Below are positions 1,248 to 21,805 of a DNA stretch of 64,000 nt, piece by piece (the stretch's first letter is position 1; each line of letters begins with the position of its first letter). The notes below the pieces were generated by a model. The model saw only the letters and a program-made list of their open reading frames with translations. It searched no databases and was not told the DNA's origin. Origin of the DNA: Octopus sinensis (Eukaryota); assembly GCF_006345805.1 (NCBI RefSeq), contig NC_043000.1:67766001-67830000 (forward strand), in the 5' to 3' direction. A program made the position numbers and the translations under genes.

Positions 1248-2078
1248 TTAATTACCATGATAACGAAGGTGCGAATAGTCAAAAGTGCTCATATAGTTGT
1301 TCTCTTGCAAATAGTAACGTGCCTGTGTTGAATGTATCTTTGGTTCAAGGTAAGCTGTTTTTAATAAGAATTTCATGCGTTCATGAACATCATTTATGTC
1401 TATCTCCTCTCCATTATACCCTGTCAGAACTGACAAGTCATCAAACCATCTGGTGTGGAAGCCAAGTGCAATTATCCCCGTATAAAGAGCGGTTGCCGCT
1501 ACAAGACTTGGTTTATAGTAACATTTTACGCTAAGAAAGTCATCATATAGCGCTAGTTCCAATACATAGTTGGTCATACTATACAAATCGTGATGGGGTT
1601 CCAATTTGAGAATAATATGGTAATACGAAAGAAAGACATAAGGAGTAACAAAAAACGTTTTACCTCTGAAACGGTTAATAACCAAAATATATATTCTACG
1701 AAGCTCATCTATAGAAGACTCTGGGTCGACTCTGGATGTCATAGCAACAATTGCAAAACCCTCATCTGTTTTAGCATTATATATTGTGTCAAAAGCAATT
1801 TTAATACATATAGCTCCAACACATTGCAGTTTTTCGCGTGAAAACAGCGGTGACTTTTCAGAAGACAAGAATAAGTCAAATAATGTAACTGATAGGTGTA
1901 AGATATCCATAAGACCGTAGTAATAATCTACACATGATATCATCCAGTTGACCACAACCTTACGATCTTCAGGGGAAAAAATATGGCGACCTTCTCGAAA
2001 ATAATTACGGACTTTCTTCTGTCGTCTTTCCATTTCAGATATACTGCCTAAATTTCTAACAACATCTGAAAAATCCAT
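1248..2078 (-). CDS. Divergent cyclin A/B-fold protein, copy 1 (276 aa, intronless CDS)
   Basis: Cyclin box pattern DRKVVVNWM..LHLSVTLFDLFL..KLQCVG matches MRAILVDWL..LHLAVNYIDRFL..KLQLVG. Second fold NYVLELALYD..YKPSLVAATAL and terminal TQARY..ENNYMS match cyclin A/B C-termini. Frame is uninterrupted. Confidence 0.92.
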   Translation of the reverse strand: MDFSDVVRNLGSISEMERRQKKVRNYFREGRHIFSPEDRKVVVNWMISCVDYYYGLMDILHLSVTLFDLFLSSEKSPLFSREKLQCVGAICIKIAFDTIYNAKTDEGFAIVAMTSRVDPESSIDELRRIYILVINRFRGKTFFVTPYVFLSYYHIILKLEPHHDLYSMTNYVLELALYDDFLSVKCYYKPSLVAATALYTGIIALGFHTRWFDDLSVLTGYNGEEIDINDVHERMKFLLKTAYLEPKIHSTQARYYLQENNYMSTFDYSHLRYHGN

Positions 2079-2544
2079 GGTCGTTCTTCTGTGAAATTAA
2101 ACGAAATTTGCTTGTTTAGAAAGTATAGCGAGGGGTGAAGCGGCGAAAACCTCAAAAATTTATCAATTGATTACGTCATTCAAATGTAACAATCAGTAAA
2201 TGTCGTTCTATTTTATTTGAATAATTAAAATCTTCAGTTGTATTTGGATATTAAACTATTGTTCTTTAACATTTGAAGTGTATTAAATTGTTTGTTATTT
2301 ACAATATGATAGTTAAGCAATACATAACATTAAAATTTAAAAATGAATATGTTTCAGTAAAGCTTAAATTCAGTTACGAAAATAACATGGAATGTTTTAA
2401 ATCTATTTAATGCCCAAAACTATCATAATAAAGTTGCAAAGCATAACCTTTATGATATTTGGGCCTATAAAACACACAAATCATAATTCTAACTTATTTG
2501 CAAAGTTTCTCAAATGCAAATGTATGTATTTAAGCAACATATAT

Positions 2545-2875
2545 GCATACATACATATATACACACGTACGTACGTACATACATACATGCATGCATACGT
2601 ACATACATACACACATATACATGCATACATACATACATACATACACACACATGCATACATACATATACGCACACATACATACATACATACATACATACAT
2701 ACATACATACATACATACATATACACACACATGCATACATACATACATACATACATACAACATACATACAGACATACATAAATGCATATATACATACATT
2801 CATATACACACACATGCATACACACACACGCATACACATACATACATACATACATACATACATACATATACAAAC
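2545..2875. repeat. (TACA)n/(CA)n compound microsatellite
   Basis: Directly visible. A shorter paralog lies at ~10578-10668. Confidence 0.97.
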
Positions 2876-17870: not shown

Positions 17871-19014
17871 TCCTTCAGTGTTAGGTTTTGTTTTAATCAG
17901 AAATTGCTCTGACGAAAGTAACATTAATTTGCTTAGGTCGTTAAATTTTTCTCAACTGATCAATGGGTCGATTGAGCAGGCCTATCAGTAAAGTACCTAT
18001 AATGACTTCTGCAAACAGTTGTAAGCCAATTTTGATCTAATAAAGGAAAAAAATGTGTAATGACCATTATCTGCAACTTGTCTTACACTCTGTGTAAAAA
18101 TCCAGTTTCTCTGGAGCCCAGCCACGGATTTACAATACAGAATTGCAATGAACCATAACAATGGACCCTGCCATAAGAGAACTTGGATTCACTAATCTAA
18201 ACAATATTATTAGTTTGACGTGCCAACAGAGAGCTTATGAAGTATTTTGCCCGGATTGATGATCCTCCACTATTAGCTCTCTCTCTCTCTCTCTATCTAT
18301 CTATCTATCTATCTATCTCTATCTCTCTATCTCTCATCACTCTCTCTCTCTTCTTCTCTCTTTGTTTTCATATATATATATATATATATATATATATATA
18401 TGCCTTTAGTATCAACTGTTAGAAAAACGAGTATTCAATACCATAGCTGAGATTAATAATATACTTTATTTTGGTAAAATCTGTTTCTTGCTACTCTTGA
18501 TTTCACCGGTAGGTAAACAAAATCTGCAGACAGGTCATAACTCGCCTGAAGATCTGGCGCACCTACAAGTGAAAGTCAGAGTAGCAAAAGATTGACATGA
18601 CCAATATATATACATATACTTACATATACATATATATATATATATATATATATTATATATATATATATATATATATATATATATATATATATCCGAATTT
18701 GTGCAAATGTGTATAGAATAATATATCACTTGAATAAAGTTAGATGCCCTGGTTTTCACATTTTTTATTATTATGTTTAATAAATGTTTTACGCTGTTGA
18801 AGTGTGTTAAACATTAAAAAAATATTCACTAATGTTCATAAAGTTCAATTAGCGCTTTCATACGTTCCTAGTAATCATCAGATTTCAAAATGTATTGACT
18901 GACAGTTGAGAAGAGCCCTTGACAATATATATATATATATATATATATATATATATATATATATATATATATATATATATATATATATATAATGTATGTA
19001 TGTATGTGTGTGTA

Positions 19015-21805
19015 TTACCTATCAGGCCGTTATAGTTCGTTTCAAACAATAATGTTTCCAATTTCATCGTTATCAACAATGTTTCCAGGTTATCTCAACC
19101 TCATCTTCAGGATATGGAATAACTTTGGTTTCTTTGCTGGCATTTTTATAGTGACCACATTATTATAATAAAGATTCTCCCGCCACAGCAGGGAAAACGT
19201 TTGTCTTAAAATATCAAAAATTTTTCCGATGACCTGATACTGTAATTTGAAATAAACAAGTGTGTGTGTGTTTAGTATTCTTACAATACAAGTCCCAAAA
19301 GGGATTTTTTCTGTCTGGTGTTAAATTTTTGAAATTTTAAAATTAAATGAAAATTTTCAAATTCGGTATATTGGACGCAATTTTTCACGTTGAATATGTT
19401 ACTGTTGTTCACTTGTTCCAGAAAGGTTTTAGAAAATGTTACAGTGGTTTAAAGTTTGATTATTTTATCCAATCACAAAACGGGATTTGGAAGCTGGCAG
19501 TTTCTGCGTAATAACTTTTATTAAATAAATGGAAGCAATATATTATGACATCGAAAGTTGCAAAAAGATTTGAAGTTTTAATCGGTTTAAATGAATAAAG
19601 TCATGTTAAACGTTGGAACAGACAATATAAAAAGAAAAATCCTTAATTTTTTTTTTTTTTAGCGGAACATTACAAAAATACAAACTGTATGTTATACTAC
19701 TGTAATTCGGTTCATGTAAACAATTAATGGCGAAAATTCAAAAACGAAAGTTTGATATACACAAGCGTTAGAGTCAGATTTTAGGGTTGGGATTTAGGGT
19801 TAGAATTTGTGTTTACGGTTAGAGTTCGGGTTTAGGGATGAAGTTTGGGGTTAGAATTAGGATTTAAGTTTTAGGGTTAGAGTTAGGATGTAGCGTTGGA
19901 GTTTAAGGTTAGAATTAGGGCTTAGAGTTAGACTTGGAACTTAGGGCTGGCGTTTAGGGCCACTCTGACCCATGGATAACCTGGGGTTAATCAATTAGTA
20001 ACATTTTTTGTGAACATTTTAAAAAAATTTTTCTGGAACAAGTAAATATGAAAATCAGATTCAGCATGAAAAATTACATCAACATACCAAATTTGAAAAG
20101 TTAAAATTTCTAACACTGTCACAGCAACAGAAAAGACCCATTAGTTTTTCTGTCTGACAAAAGAATGCAAAACAAATGTTCGAACAGGAATGTAAACAAT
20201 TTAAATAAGAAAATTTCTCAATGAAATTTGTTTGCGAAAAATTACAAAGGAATAAACTGTAGTAATACTGTACTAATAGTTCAATTCATGTAAACAATAG
20301 ATTTTTTTGTGGCGAAAATTCAAGAACGGGAGTTGAGAATAGAGGTACATAGTGGCTGTAGCAATTTTAAGCAGACAACTGCGTGTCTTGTTACAATGAA
20401 AACTGGGAGCAATATGTTTGTGGCTTACGATAGGATAAAATTACCCAAAATAGGCAAATTTTAAGAAGTTATTAAACTTTTGTATTTATTAATTTATGGC
20501 AAAAATTAATTTCATCTCCATAACTAGCATGCACAACTACATGAATATACCAAATTTGAAATCAAATGTAACAAAATTAAAGGAATTGAAAAGTGAGAGC
20601 GAAGCAGAAAAGAACTCACAAAATTTTTTAACTTTTATTAAAGGTTTGAATAATCAAGAGCGCTCATATAGTTGCTCTCTTTAAGACCATATCTTGCCTG
20701 TGTTGTATGTTCCCTTGGTTCAAGATAAACTGTTTTTAATAAGAAAATCATGCGTTCATGAACAATTAGCATGTCTTCCTCCTTTCCATTATACGGTGTT
20801 AGAATTGACAAATCCTTAAACCATCTCGTGTGGAAGTCAAAGACAATTATCCCCGTATAAAGAGCAGCTGCCGCTACAAGACTTGGTTTAAAGTAATTTT
20901 TTAGGCTAAGAAAGTCATCATATAATGCTAGTTCCAATAAATAATTGGTCATACTATGCAAATCGTGACGAGGTTTCAATTTGAGAATAATATGGTAATA
21001 CGAAAGGAAGACATATGGAGTAACAAAAAACGTTTTACCATTGAAACGTTTAGAAACCAAAACGTACATTCTATGAAGCTCATCTAAAGAAGACTCTGGG
21101 TCGACTTTCGAAGTCATAGTAATAATTTCCAGACCCTCATCGGTTACACGATTATATATCGTGTCAAAAGCAATTCTAAGACATATAGCTCCGACACATT
21201 GCAGTTTTTCGCATGAAATCGGCGGTGATCTTCTAGAAGACAGGAATAAGTCAAATAATGCAACTGATAGGTGGATGACATCCAAAACACTGGACCAATT
21301 ATCTGCGCATGCTATCATCCAGTTGACCACAGCCTTACGATCTTCAGGCTGAAAATTATGGTGACCATCTCGAAAATAATTACGGACTTTCTTCTGTCGT
21401 CTTTCATGTTCATATACATTTCTTAAATTTCTAACAACATCTGAAAAATCCATGGTCGTTCTTCTGCAAAATTACACGAAACTTGCTTGAATAGAAAGTA
21501 TAGTGAAGTGTGAAGTGGTGAAAACCACAAAAATTTCTCAGTTGATTGCGTCATTCAAACGTAACAATCAGCAAGTGTCGTTGCCAGTTTATTTGAATAA
21601 TTAAAATCTTCACTTGGATTTGGATGTTAAACTATTTATTGATCTTTAACATTTGAAGTGTATTAAACTGTTTATTATTCACAACATGATTGTTAAGCAA
21701 CGTATAACATTCAAATTTAAAAATCAAATATGCATTTCAATAAAGCTTAAATTCAGTTACGAAAATAACTTGAAATGTTTTTAAATCTATTTAATGCCTA
21801 AAATT
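19015..21805. repeat. Duplicated cyclin module, unit 3
   Basis: Collinear with units 1 and 2. Homology ends at atctatttaatgcctaaa, where a Gypsy remnant begins. Confidence 0.9.
20638..21453 (-). CDS. Divergent cyclin A/B-fold protein, copy 3 (271 aa, intronless CDS)
   Basis: Same cyclin box and second-fold motifs. 199/271 aa identical to copy 1 (manual count). AATAAA about 150 nt downstream (plus-strand tttatt 20485-20490). Confidence 0.92.
   Translation of the reverse strand: MDFSDVVRNLRNVYEHERRQKKVRNYFRDGHHNFQPEDRKAVVNWMIACADNWSSVLDVIHLSVALFDLFLSSRRSPPISCEKLQCVGAICLRIAFDTIYNRVTDEGLEIITMTSKVDPESSLDELHRMYVLVSKRFNGKTFFVTPYVFLSYYHIILKLKPRHDLHSMTNYLLELALYDDFLSLKNYFKPSLVAAAALYTGIIVFDFHTRWFKDLSILTPYNGKEEDMLIVHERMIFLLKTVYLEPREHTTQARYGLKESNYMSALDYSNL

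Follow-up and report, generated by a model that had tools for sequence, protein, structure and literature searches.

A tandem cluster of fast-changing cyclin-fold genes in octopods lacks canonical CDK-contact residues

Introduction

Cyclin F (CCNF) is a large F-box protein, conserved and single-copy, whose intact hydrophobic patch recruits substrates. CNTD1/COSA-1 are divergent cyclin-like meiotic crossover factors of the germline whose working form may be CDK-free, and CNTD1 is widely conserved in animals. Lineage-specific amplifications of cell-cycle regulators are known from primates, where Speedy/RINGO (SPDYE) genes have expanded, and from Oikopleura, with its cyclin and CDK1 paralogs. Fast change of a protein together with its partner is a pattern typical of genes in the germline or in genetic conflict, and to our knowledge faster-than-neutral evolution has not been reported for any cyclin-fold genes. 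In CDK-binding cyclins, the Lys266/Glu295 pair grips the loop ahead of the PSTAIRE helix. This pair is conserved from Pho80 to cyclin T and is retained by the v-cyclins, which activate CDK6 (PMC3590450). Mutating the Lys266/Glu295/Phe304 triad is the standard route to abolish CDK binding, and cyclin F, which is without these contact residues, binds no CDKs (PMC12356897).

Results

Copy layout and flanking motifs

The locus lies on Octopus sinensis chromosome CM016862.1 (GCA_006345805.1), and positions 1-31453 of the window (the whole 64,000-nucleotide stretch analysed) matched it at 100%. Three minus-strand cyclin-fold ORFs were found where a sequence-only reading had placed them: c1 (1248..2078, 276 aa) and c3 (20638..21453, 271 aa), both of subfamily I, and c2 (8494..9312). 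Two frames are open, as that reading had said; they are those of c1 and c3. c2 carries one nonsense codon with the rest in frame (TAG at codon 35, window 9208-9210, where the sister copy reads CAG). The claimed identities of about 73% and 76% were reproduced by tblastn over 271 codons, which gave 73.4% for c1-c3, 76.0% for c2-c3 and 67.9% for c1-c2, with zero internal indels. Each copy sits in a duplicated unit of ~2.4-2.8 kb on the minus strand with shared flanks, and DNA comparison (75-84% identity among the three) placed unit 1 at 97-2459, unit 2 at 6869..9633 and unit 3 at 18993..21807, the latter two made up of 3' flank, CDS and 5' flank. The 3' flank of unit 1 (97..1247, minus strand) is common to units 2 and 3; its homology ends near position 97, and the window, which had been supposed to begin inside unit 1, starts just beyond its edge.

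More copies had been suspected to the left, and an intact fourth copy, c0 (P0002, 272 aa), was located there at a distance of 9,492 bp from window position 1. c0 and c2 are 94.5% identical in protein and 3.3% apart in CDS, and c2 is a young duplicate of c0. The four copies c0, c1, c2 and c3 are arranged head-to-tail; tblastn found no further copy within the window beyond c1-c3. To the right, at ~64 kb, there is a further, more distant paralog, which belongs to subfamily II. LINEs and other repeats are abundant in the surroundings. In O. bimaculoides the cluster was located on CM046604.1; the locus is orthologous in the two Octopus species, and its flanks can be aligned on both sides. c1 is the ortholog of O. 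bimaculoides P0004 on the basis of flanks with K=0.09 over 2.6 kb, and this species also has its own recent pair, P0003/P0005.

A compact architecture, with upstream motifs and an AATAAA ~150 nt past the stop, is kept across copies and species. The 5' flank of unit 1 (2079..2459, minus strand) carries TTTCGTTTAATTT at 2094-2106 and TGACGTAA at 2171-2178, 100 nt upstream of the c1 ATG. TGACGTAA is also found in the unit 2 5' flank at 9355-9362, where a 50-bp deletion shortens its distance to the c2 ATG, and the unit 3 5' flank has TTTCGTGTAATTT at 21469-21481 and TGACGCAA at 21546-21553. AATAAA occurs at 8337-8342 in the unit 2 3' flank and at 20485-20490 in that of unit 3. The first ~220 nt 3' of the stop are well conserved in all copies, and a telomere-like (CCCTAA)n-derived tract starts from about +230 in the unit 1 3' flank. 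Family members have a single-exon coding region, and the earlier description of the genes as intronless is shown for the CDS alone; an acceptor-like TTTCGCAG stands 10 nt upstream of every ATG.

Family limits and fold

An exhaustive HMMER scan of 1.84 billion representatives returned six at E<1e-30, after which the score drops from 138 to 93 bits, the level of ordinary cyclins. The named members come only from O. sinensis, O. vulgaris, O. bimaculoides and Argonauta hians, in line with the suggested lineage-specific family; they are 257-276 aa long, and the N-terminal regulatory region is absent. In an NJ tree with 97 cyclins the family was monophyletic, and the nearest sequences outside it are cellular cyclins. 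We take the family to be real and protein-coding; it has so far been named in octopods alone, and on its scores it appears as a sharply separate, lineage-specific family. Three further family clusters (P0011/P0158, P0170 and P0169/P0012) come from samples outside the named-species tally, P0011 and P0170 had no repeats in common with ~200 kb of Octopus DNA, and the family may therefore extend beyond octopods. Orthology to CNTD1 was considered and rejected because the HMMER scan gave no intermediate-score relatives outside the family. We found no paper describing the family in the literature, and to that extent it is undescribed, as had been suggested, but NCBI does annotate the genes.

The proposed cyclin A/B fold was borne out by Pfam, by profile comparison with the PDB and by AF2 with Foldseek. 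All three window copies exceed the Pfam curated cut-offs for Cyclin_N and Cyclin_C (38 and 40 bits in c1), and the family profile scored 66 bits against cyclin A2, 46 against D1, 40 against B1, 39 against F and 31 against E1. The AF2 model of c3 had a pLDDT of 95.4, from an input alignment of mostly ordinary cyclins, which biases toward the canonical fold; Foldseek matched it to cyclin A2/B1 at TM 0.79-0.86 (rmsd ~2.6 A, E~2e-9) and clearly more poorly to viral cyclins (TM 0.53-0.68, E>=4e-6). An A/B-type cyclin fold is thus predicted, and the protein corresponds to cyclin A residues ~186-424 of 432, the crystallised CDK2-activating fragment.

CDK-contact residues

Lys266 is K in 97/97 ordinary A/B cyclins and is deleted in 14/14 family members, a gap whose placement depends on the alignment (Thr plus a one-residue gap in HMMER, a two-residue gap in MAFFT, a basic residue in neither). 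Glu295 is likewise E in 97/97 ordinary cyclins, and all 14 members have Y/H/F/L/R there. Position 304, aromatic in 96/97 ordinary cyclins, is G in 6/6 cluster copies. The RxL docking-patch determinants are altered in 14/14 members (M210 to D/N and E220 to A/S), while R211, D240, W217 and Q254 are retained in all 14 and L253 in 13/14. The R211 position is preceded by 36-38 residues in the family versus a median of 155 in ordinary cyclins, and no D-box or KEN box was found in the family proteins. The missing CDK-contact residues had been overlooked by the earlier reading.

Because K266/E295, the cluster F304 and Met210/Glu220 are lost or changed, canonical CDK activation may well be lost, and the family proteins are probably not canonical CDK activators. 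Since universal CDK-contact residues are absent, "cyclin" is here a name for a fold and probably not for a function. Loss of canonical contacts does not prove that CDK binding is lost, and non-cyclin activators with a cyclin-like fold use other contacts for it. The proteins could be working CDK activators, that is, non-degradable, box-only cyclin A-like proteins that act on CDK1/CDK2 through compensating contacts in a specialised, probably germline, cycle. In favour of this, the prediction of the whole A/B fold is of high confidence and covers the N-terminal helix, which in cyclin A touches the CDK, five residues (R211, D240, W217, L253 and Q254) are retained, the protein corresponds to the activating cyclin A fragment, and a cyclin without D-box or KEN box would be stable. 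But the pair missing in every member is invariant in the ordinary cyclins and conserved as far as Pho80 (PMC3590450), the cluster copies also lack F304, and triad mutation stops CDK binding, as its absence does in cyclin F (PMC12356897). Across the subfamilies, no conserved basic residue substituting for K266 was found. We regard such an activator as unlikely, though it is the strongest of the alternatives.

Selection and maintenance of the reading frame

The copies could also be dead or dying duplicates, retro-pseudogenes that drift neutrally with frames left open by luck. Pairwise dN/dS of 0.6-1.6, overall near 1, would fit this, as would CDS nucleotide divergence like that of paralogous flanks, the nonsense codon in c2 and the truncated C-terminus of P0004, which ends 19 codons early. 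However, the seven subfamily I genes have no frameshifting indel in ~816 bp and one stop only, with zero internal CDS indels against 9-18 indel events/kb in the flanks, and random substitution would give a probability of no stop of ~0.01 per pair. The frames have also stayed open since the Octopus-Argonauta split, at dS >1, and sites are strongly heterogeneous, with ~20% at omega ~0 and 37 columns invariant across 12 members.

The protein changes faster than the surrounding non-coding DNA, and neutrality does not predict dN above both dS and flank divergence. For c1/P0004, dN was 0.167 and dS 0.105 (dN/dS 1.60), and dN/dS was 1.21 for c0/P0005 and 2.49 for P0003/P0005. Non-synonymous versus orthologous flank divergence was 0.150 versus 0.084 (Fisher p=3e-6) in one comparison and 0.167 versus 0.070 (p=1e-9) in a second. 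Amino-acid sites diverge at roughly double the rate of orthologous flanks, and divergence of the CDS was about twofold that of its adjoining 130 nt on the 5' side and 215 nt on the 3' side. Site models gave an M0 omega of 1.32 and an LRT of 54.7 for M2a vs M1a, placing 17.6% of sites in a class with omega 4.6, in a test run with the author's own code on seven sequences from paralogs that possibly exchange sequence, and gene conversion can inflate such tests. The signal held in the N- and C-terminal thirds, each fitted with its own tree, and ten null simulations gave LRT <= 4.2. Versus subfamily II, dN/dS was ~0.5 at dS ~1, which means long-term constraint, and in subfamily IV it was 0.13.

Neutral drift is therefore strongly disfavoured, and we hold it to be very improbable. 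A dN/dS near 1, combined with absent expression, had been named in advance as a sign against the family; the value is indeed about 1 or above, but a range of ~1-2.5 is read as positive selection with strict ORF upkeep and not as decay. The suggestion that the copies are kept under selection is supported; c2, however, is disabled by its nonsense codon. Because c2 has a stop and P0004 ends early, part of the copies may be in the course of being lost.

Annotation of the locus

The NCBI annotation, which names the genes "cyclin-B2-1-like" and "cyclin-B1-2-like", is often wrong. The model P0001, "cyclin-B2-1-like", fuses codons 1-40 of c3 with codons 41-276 of c1 over a 20.2-kb span, no stand-alone c1 or c3 product is on record, and if the model were correct both copies would be exons of one spliced 20-kb gene. 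But each of the two copies has an ATG, a full open frame, conserved upstream motifs and a conserved 3' region of its own, and the junction lies inside a 16-nt stretch identical in both, where no GT-AG pair yields the annotated product and a weak GC-AG pair alone fits. The O. bimaculoides annotation has the orthologs as distinct genes of one exon each, and a second family model, P0157, is likewise contradicted by an intact single-exon ORF, so we give the merged gene very little credence. In the O. vulgaris prediction P0006, a 23-codon stretch corresponding to window 12666..12734 (minus strand) is the first exon and is spliced into the c2 body.

That the units are copies of a mobile element carrying viral, endogenous-viral or transposon cargo is hardly credible: the genes are box-only and intron-free like herpesviral v-cyclins and giant-virus cyclins and their surroundings are repeat-rich, but each unit holds only a cyclin ORF and non-coding flanks, with no terminal repeats and no viral, RT or transposase gene, the copies are few, the locus has an ortholog in the second Octopus species, the structural match is clearly better to A2/B1 than to viral cyclins, and the closest non-family sequences are cellular.

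Discussion

The explanation we favour, and consider somewhat probable, is a "pseudo-cyclin" family, specific to its lineage and subject to diversifying selection, that probably does not activate CDKs in the canonical way. Its ancestor would be an A/B-type cyclin that lost everything but the two cyclin boxes and the N-terminal helix, and a retro-origin, as a 5'-truncated retrocopy, is plausible. Copy number would then rise and fall by local birth and death through tandem or segmental duplication, with c2 knocked out recently. Recurrent positive selection would act on about one-sixth of the codons of the cluster copies, mostly in the N-terminal third, the C-terminal cyclin box and the tail, while about one-fifth of the codons and the reading frame are strictly conserved. 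With activation through the canonical interface presumably lost, the proteins would more likely be stable binding modules with a cyclin fold, acting as adaptor, decoy or inhibitor towards a partner that may itself change fast, and the setting may be the germline or a genetic conflict.

Compared with known systems, CNTD1/COSA-1 are similar in being divergent, cyclin-like, germline and possibly CDK-free in their working form. The Speedy/RINGO and Oikopleura amplifications are also lineage-specific, locally duplicated and derived from core cell-cycle regulators, some of them fast-evolving, but they have other folds or are canonical cyclins that retain CDK contacts. Viral cyclins share the box-only form (~220-260 aa), the absence of degradation motifs and coding without introns, but they keep the contact pair and match the fold less well, and the octopod genes have a stable, orthologous place in the chromosome. 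Cyclin F offers the precedent for a cyclin fold that works as a binding module independently of CDKs; the octopod proteins differ in their altered patch and in having no F-box. Closest are cyclins A2 and B1, with the same two cyclin boxes and N-terminal helix; A2 is the best match to both profile and structure, and B1 is structurally nearly as good. However, identity to them is only 20-25%, the regulatory N-terminus, degradation boxes and principal CDK contacts are gone or changed, and the octopod genes form a tandem array of single-exon CDSs with dN/dS of at least about 1, where cyclins A2 and B1 are under strong constraint.

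Results

Copies and duplicated units at the locus

The three minus-strand cyclin-fold ORFs that the sequence-only reading had described were all present in the window, and two of them were open: c1 (1248-2078) encoded 276 aa and c3 (20638-21453) encoded 271 aa. The third, c2 (8494-9312), was in frame with one TAG at codon 35 (window 9208-9210). Tblastn of each ORF against the window gave amino acid identities over 271 codons that agreed with the earlier values (c1-c3 73.4%, c2-c3 76.0%, c1-c2 67.9%), and no further copy was found in the window by this search. Self-comparison of the window defined duplicated units at 97-2459, 6869-9633 and 18993-21807 with 75-84% DNA identity, in which the CDS has roughly 1.1-1.6 kb of flank on its 3' side and 0.35 kb on its 5' side. 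This bore out the shared flanks claimed around each copy. Unit 1 had been thought to be cut by the window start, which was incorrect, as its homology stopped at about position 97, just inside the window.

Window positions 1-31453 were 100% identical to the Octopus sinensis chromosome CM016862.1 (GCA_006345805.1), on which the window is 67,766,001-67,830,000 of the + strand. More copies had been considered possible to the left, and a fourth one, c0, was indeed located 9,492 bp left of the window. It is P0002, named 'cyclin-B1-2-like' by NCBI, and is intact, with a single exon and 272 aa. The c0 and c2 copies are a young pair, with a CDS difference of 3.3% and units 92.7% alike over 2.6 kb, and the c2 stop was CAG>TAG relative to c0. 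Between c0 (10001-10819 of the O. sinensis stretch L002) and c2, 13 of the 14 amino acid differences, the nonsense codon aside, were within codons 203-248, and codons 1-200 had one replacement and seven silent changes. Codons 203-248 are either a local hotspot or a conversion tract.

About 64 kb right of the window, a distant paralog (3001-3807 of the O. sinensis stretch L010) had an intact single-exon ORF of 268 aa that was 86% identical to the O. bimaculoides protein P0007. The O. bimaculoides cluster was found on CM046604.1, where P0005 and P0004 are convergent and 16 kb apart and P0007 is 112 kb away. The convergent P0005 (+) and P0004 (-) occupy 88.118-88.136 Mb (L004/L005), whereas c0 and c1, which correspond to them in O. 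sinensis, lie head-to-tail; this reflects either an inversion or an assembly difference. Judged from flank similarity, c3 had no annotated O. bimaculoides ortholog.

Family limits and subfamilies

In a word-indexed search, all relatives found came from three species, O. sinensis, O. bimaculoides and O. vulgaris. HMMER comparison of a seven-member profile with 1.84 billion representative proteins then gave six representatives with E<1e-30; below these was a gap from 138 to 93 bits, after which came ordinary cyclins from plants, annelids and protists. The named members added by HMMER were P0008 of O. bimaculoides and P0009 of Argonauta hians, and three further clusters carried no species name (P0011/P0158, P0170 and P0169/P0012; samples SRR9969974, SRR8281680, ERR12921337, ERR12921340 and ERZ21867824). 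An NJ tree that included 97 ordinary cyclins grouped the 14 family members, all 257-276 aa long, as one clade with four subfamilies. Subfamily I consisted of the window cluster and the O. bimaculoides proteins P0003, P0004 and P0005; subfamily II of P0007, the O. sinensis gene right of the window and P0009; subfamily III of P0008 and P0169; and subfamily IV of P0011, P0158 and P0170. No repeats common to the P0011/P0170 contigs of subfamily IV and about 200 kb of Octopus DNA were found. The separate clade, the 138 to 93 bit gap and the named members from Octopus and Argonauta upheld the proposal of a lineage-specific expanded family. Its age is at least that of the Octopus-Argonauta split, and it may be limited to octopods, from which all the named members come.

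Fold and cyclin class

All three window ORFs passed the Pfam curated cut-offs (Cyclin_N 30-41 bits, cut-off 23; Cyclin_C 37-43 bits, cut-off 22). An AF2 model built on a 111-sequence alignment, mostly of canonical cyclins, had pLDDT 95.4 and pTM 0.93, with two five-helix cyclin-box repeats and helices in canonical order; it superseded a poor model from the 7 family sequences alone (pLDDT 51.5). The best PDB matches of the model in Foldseek were cyclin A2 and B1 chains (TM 0.79-0.86, rmsd about 2.6 A, 20-22% identity). The family profile scored 66 bits against cyclin A2, 46 against D1, 42 against D3, 40 against B1, 39 against F and 31 against E1, and spanned residues ~186-424 of the 432-residue cyclin A2 chain. 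Sequence profile and structural model thus point to an A/B-type fold that is closest to A by profile score. The sequence is too divergent to be assigned to any one class as an ortholog, and the nearest non-family sequences are uninformative: most of these matches were unnamed metagenome or Logan proteins, and the others were one 'cyclin B' and a B-type cyclin from a plant. In the NJ tree of the 14 members and 97 ordinary cyclins, the family was on a long branch and its sister was a single unnamed 261-aa protein.

Family proteins have 36-38 residues before the equivalent of R211, all in the N-terminal helix, compared with a median of 155 in ordinary cyclins. The proteins have no KEN box and, for a destruction box (RxxLxxxxN), no RxxL in a free N-terminus.

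CDK interface residues

In the 111-sequence alignment, the 14 members were set against 97 ordinary A/B-type cyclins, and HMMER alignment to cyclin A2 agreed (cyclin A2 numbering). K266 is K in 97 of 97 ordinary cyclins and was deleted in 14 of 14 members, and E295, also invariant (97/97), was replaced by Y, H, F, L or R in every member. F304, aromatic in 96/97, was G in the six cluster-type copies (6/6) and Y, H, I or F in the other members. L255 (L in 94/97) was C in 13/14, M210 (M in 82/97) was D or N in 14/14, and E220 (E or D in 78/97) was A or S in 14/14. On the other hand, R211, D240, W217 and Q254, which are conserved in ordinary cyclins, were kept in all 14 members, L253 (L in 89/97) was L in 13 and M in one, and L214 showed conservative swaps (V/I/L). 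The MRAIL hydrophobic patch for RxL docking comprises M210, I213, L214, W217, E220, L253 and Q254, so the patch was partly kept and partly changed.

The Lys/Glu pair hydrogen-bonds the loop preceding the PSTAIRE helix, and its conservation extends from Pho80 through cyclins B, E, D, T and Y to viral cyclins (PMC3590450). To abolish CDK binding, K266, E295 and F304 have been replaced by alanine, and cyclin F, which is without these residues, does not bind CDK (PMC12356897). Because K266 and E295 were lost, and F304 in the cluster as well, we infer, rather than demonstrate, that the family proteins do not activate CDK canonically. The main rival to a fold without CDK grip is a non-degradable CDK activator that binds non-canonically; the bare N-terminus and the kept interface residues would fit it, and the lost Lys/Glu pair is the evidence on the other side.

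Selection and reading-frame maintenance

Pairwise dN/dS was calculated by the Nei-Gojobori method. Values were 0.63-0.86 among the O. sinensis paralogs, 1.60 for c1/P0004 (bootstrap CI 0.99-2.94), 1.21 for c0/P0005 and 2.49 for P0003/P0005, with 69 replacement and 8 silent changes in the last pair. Between subfamily I and P0007 of subfamily II the ratio was about 0.5 at a dS of about 1, and within subfamily II it was 1.0 between O. sinensis and O. bimaculoides (dN = dS = 0.068). P0170/P0011 of subfamily IV gave 0.13 at dS 0.77, so this subfamily (L006-L009 and L011, from unnamed samples) was under strong constraint, unlike the Octopus cluster.

Ratios near 1 could come from neutral decay, which was ruled out by the indel-free CDS and the scarcity of stops. 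The paralog flanks had 9-18 indel events per kb, mostly non-multiples of three, but the 816-bp CDS had no internal indel. After random substitution at the observed density, the frame stayed stop-free in about 1% of trials per pair, and only one stop was found across the seven subfamily I genes.

The coding sequence also changed faster than the DNA around it. For c1/P0004, orthologous flanks differed by 8.4% over 2.6 kb and non-synonymous sites by 15.0% (Fisher p=3e-6), and for c0/P0005 the values were 7.0% and 16.7% (p=1e-9). The CDS diverged about twice as much as the 130 nt on its 5' side and the 215 nt on its 3' side. Site models were fitted with our own codon-model code (F3x4, NJ tree) to the seven subfamily I genes, and M0 gave omega 1.32. 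M2a was better than M1a (LRT 54.7, p~1e-12; gene conversion possible among these genes), with 19.5% of sites at omega ~0, 63% at omega 1 and 17.6% at omega 4.6. When thirds were refitted with their own trees, codons 1-92 gave LRT 22 and codons 185-276 LRT 31, and the signal was not kept in codons 93-184 (LRT 3.7). Null simulations of 10 data sets had LRT 0-4.2. Selected sites with posterior >0.9, numbered as c3 residues and placed on the helix map of the AF2 model, were in the N-terminal helix (11, 16), the alpha1-alpha2 loop adjoining the docking patch (53, 54), other loops (102, 123, 206, 224), helix alpha5' (229, 237, 240) and the C-terminal tail (246, 257, 258, 270). With dN above both dS and the neutral rate, and a better fit with omega>1, the sequences argue for positive selection. 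The claim that the copies are kept under selection therefore stood and was extended by strict ORF maintenance, and dN/dS near or above 1 here reflected change faster than neutral rather than neutrality.

Gene models and gene architecture

In the NCBI model P0001 ('cyclin-B2-1-like'), codons 1-40 of c3 are spliced to the body of c1, and the model covers 20.2 kb. Its junction is inside a 16-nt stretch identical in c1 and c3, no GT-AG pair yields the product and only a weak GC-AG pair fits, so a single 20-kb spliced c3-c1 gene was ruled out by the splice sites together with the ORFs. Neither c1 nor c3 is on record as an exact product in public assemblies. For the right-hand subfamily II gene, the NCBI model P0157 has a 3' intron and a different C-terminus, which is contradicted by the intact 268-aa ORF in the DNA. 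The O. vulgaris model P0006 has a first exon of 23 aa that is 100% identical to window 12666-12734 (-) and continues into c2 past the nonsense codon; the C-terminal part of the model matches the window's c2 exactly. This suggests that the c2 nonsense codon is shared with O. vulgaris. Public models of the family are thus unreliable (a c3/c1 chimera, a false 3' intron and made-up exons that bypass a stop), and expression or comparative studies built on them will miss or mis-assign these genes.

Every member whose DNA was readable had a single-exon CDS, and 'intronless' applies to the CDS alone. A TGACG(T/C)AA motif was found ~100 nt 5' of the ATG in all subfamily I copies of both species, nearer the ATG in c2 owing to a 50-bp deletion. 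TTTCGT(T/G)TAATTT, 15-30 nt 5' of the ATG, was common to all subfamily I copies, and the related GTTTCGTTAAA was present in subfamily II of Octopus and Argonauta. An acceptor-like TTTCGCAG ended 10 nt 5' of the ATG. The first ~220 nt 3' of the stop were well conserved, with AATAAA at about +150 in c0, c2 and c3. These motifs give the subfamily I gene the look of a compact unit of transcription, and its 5' UTR may contain an intron. TGACG was upstream in all subfamilies, which is a lead only at a chance expectation of ~0.45 per 300 bp. The Logan contigs carrying P0011 had no poly(A) ends, so they gave no evidence of transcription. A degenerate telomere-like (CCCTAA/CTAAAC)n tract was seen ~230 nt after the c1 stop (window ~700-1010) and also after its O. 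bimaculoides ortholog P0004 (L005), and was absent from c0, c2 and c3.

Origin of the copies and other elements in the window

Duplication at the DNA level, flanks included, gave rise to the copies now present. For the founder, a probable retro-origin had been proposed. If an A/B cyclin mRNA had been retrocopied without its 5' part, as often happens in LINE-mediated retrocopying, both the single-exon CDS and the missing N-terminal region would be accounted for. Neither a parent gene nor a poly(A) remnant or target-site duplication could be demonstrated, and the latter two marks are not expected to survive in an old family (dS >1) whose units are secondary products of DNA duplication.

An intact LINE ORF of 1040 aa at window 55486-58608 (-) encoded an Exo_endo_phos endonuclease, an RVT_1 reverse transcriptase and a PHD-like finger, and this LINE may be active. 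A decayed, broken copy at 41381-43356, 12 kb to its left, was 78% identical, and a 157-bp tandem repeat (54783-55338; 3.5 copies, 95% identity) was just upstream of the LINE. LINE-type ORF fragments were also seen between the cyclin units at 9748-10392 (-), 5383-5751 (-) and 17571-17991, with the RT C-terminal motif '...LLYGSETW...' and no Pfam match at E<=0.01. An 891-bp inverted repeat (31831-32721 / 33236-34125) had arms 99.2% identical and ~500 bp apart, and an ORF spanning one arm (32701-33444) had a weak GIY-YIG match (E 0.004), so the repeat may be a Penelope-like or fold-back element. Microsatellites of the (TATG/CATA)n type at 2410-2975, 4270-4704, 10520-10861 and 23869-24313 produced spurious ORFs on both strands (MYVC and HTYI repeats). 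A 139-bp satellite array with higher-order structure, its copies ~84-97% alike, began at 58826 and ran off the right window end (64000).

Discussion

The cyclin-fold family described here is real and lineage-specific; it duplicates in tandem and evolves by birth and death. Its proteins probably work as stable cyclin-fold adaptors or decoys that engage a partner which itself changes rapidly. We found no description of it in the literature, and it is known so far under automatic, partly wrong names only.

A bolder reading, which we put forward tentatively and would not be surprised to see fail, is that these are octopod-born 'pseudo-cyclins', stable cyclin folds without the universal CDK grip, in an arms race with a fast-changing partner. 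That partner could be a factor of the germline or of meiotic drive, a selfish element, or a protein by which a pathogen targets the cell-cycle machinery. To our knowledge, conflict-driven adaptive diversification of the cyclin fold has not been described for cyclins, so if the 'pseudo-cyclin' reading is true, the fold would be a substrate for it. If expressed, the genes would be a natural experiment on the cyclin fold without CDK and a candidate genetic-conflict or reproductive family in cephalopods, where we know of few such gene systems.

Among known systems, viral cyclins matched the AF2 model less well (TM 0.53-0.68), and a viral origin was ruled out by structure and genomic context. The A/B-type mitotic cyclins have an N-terminal regulatory region with a D-box or KEN, which the family proteins are without. 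Cyclins are among the most conserved eukaryotic regulators, and lineage-specific copies are normally recognisable CDK partners; in this clade the fold and the frame were kept, the Lys/Glu pair that all CDK-binding cyclins share was dropped and the protein changed about twofold faster than the neighbouring non-coding DNA.
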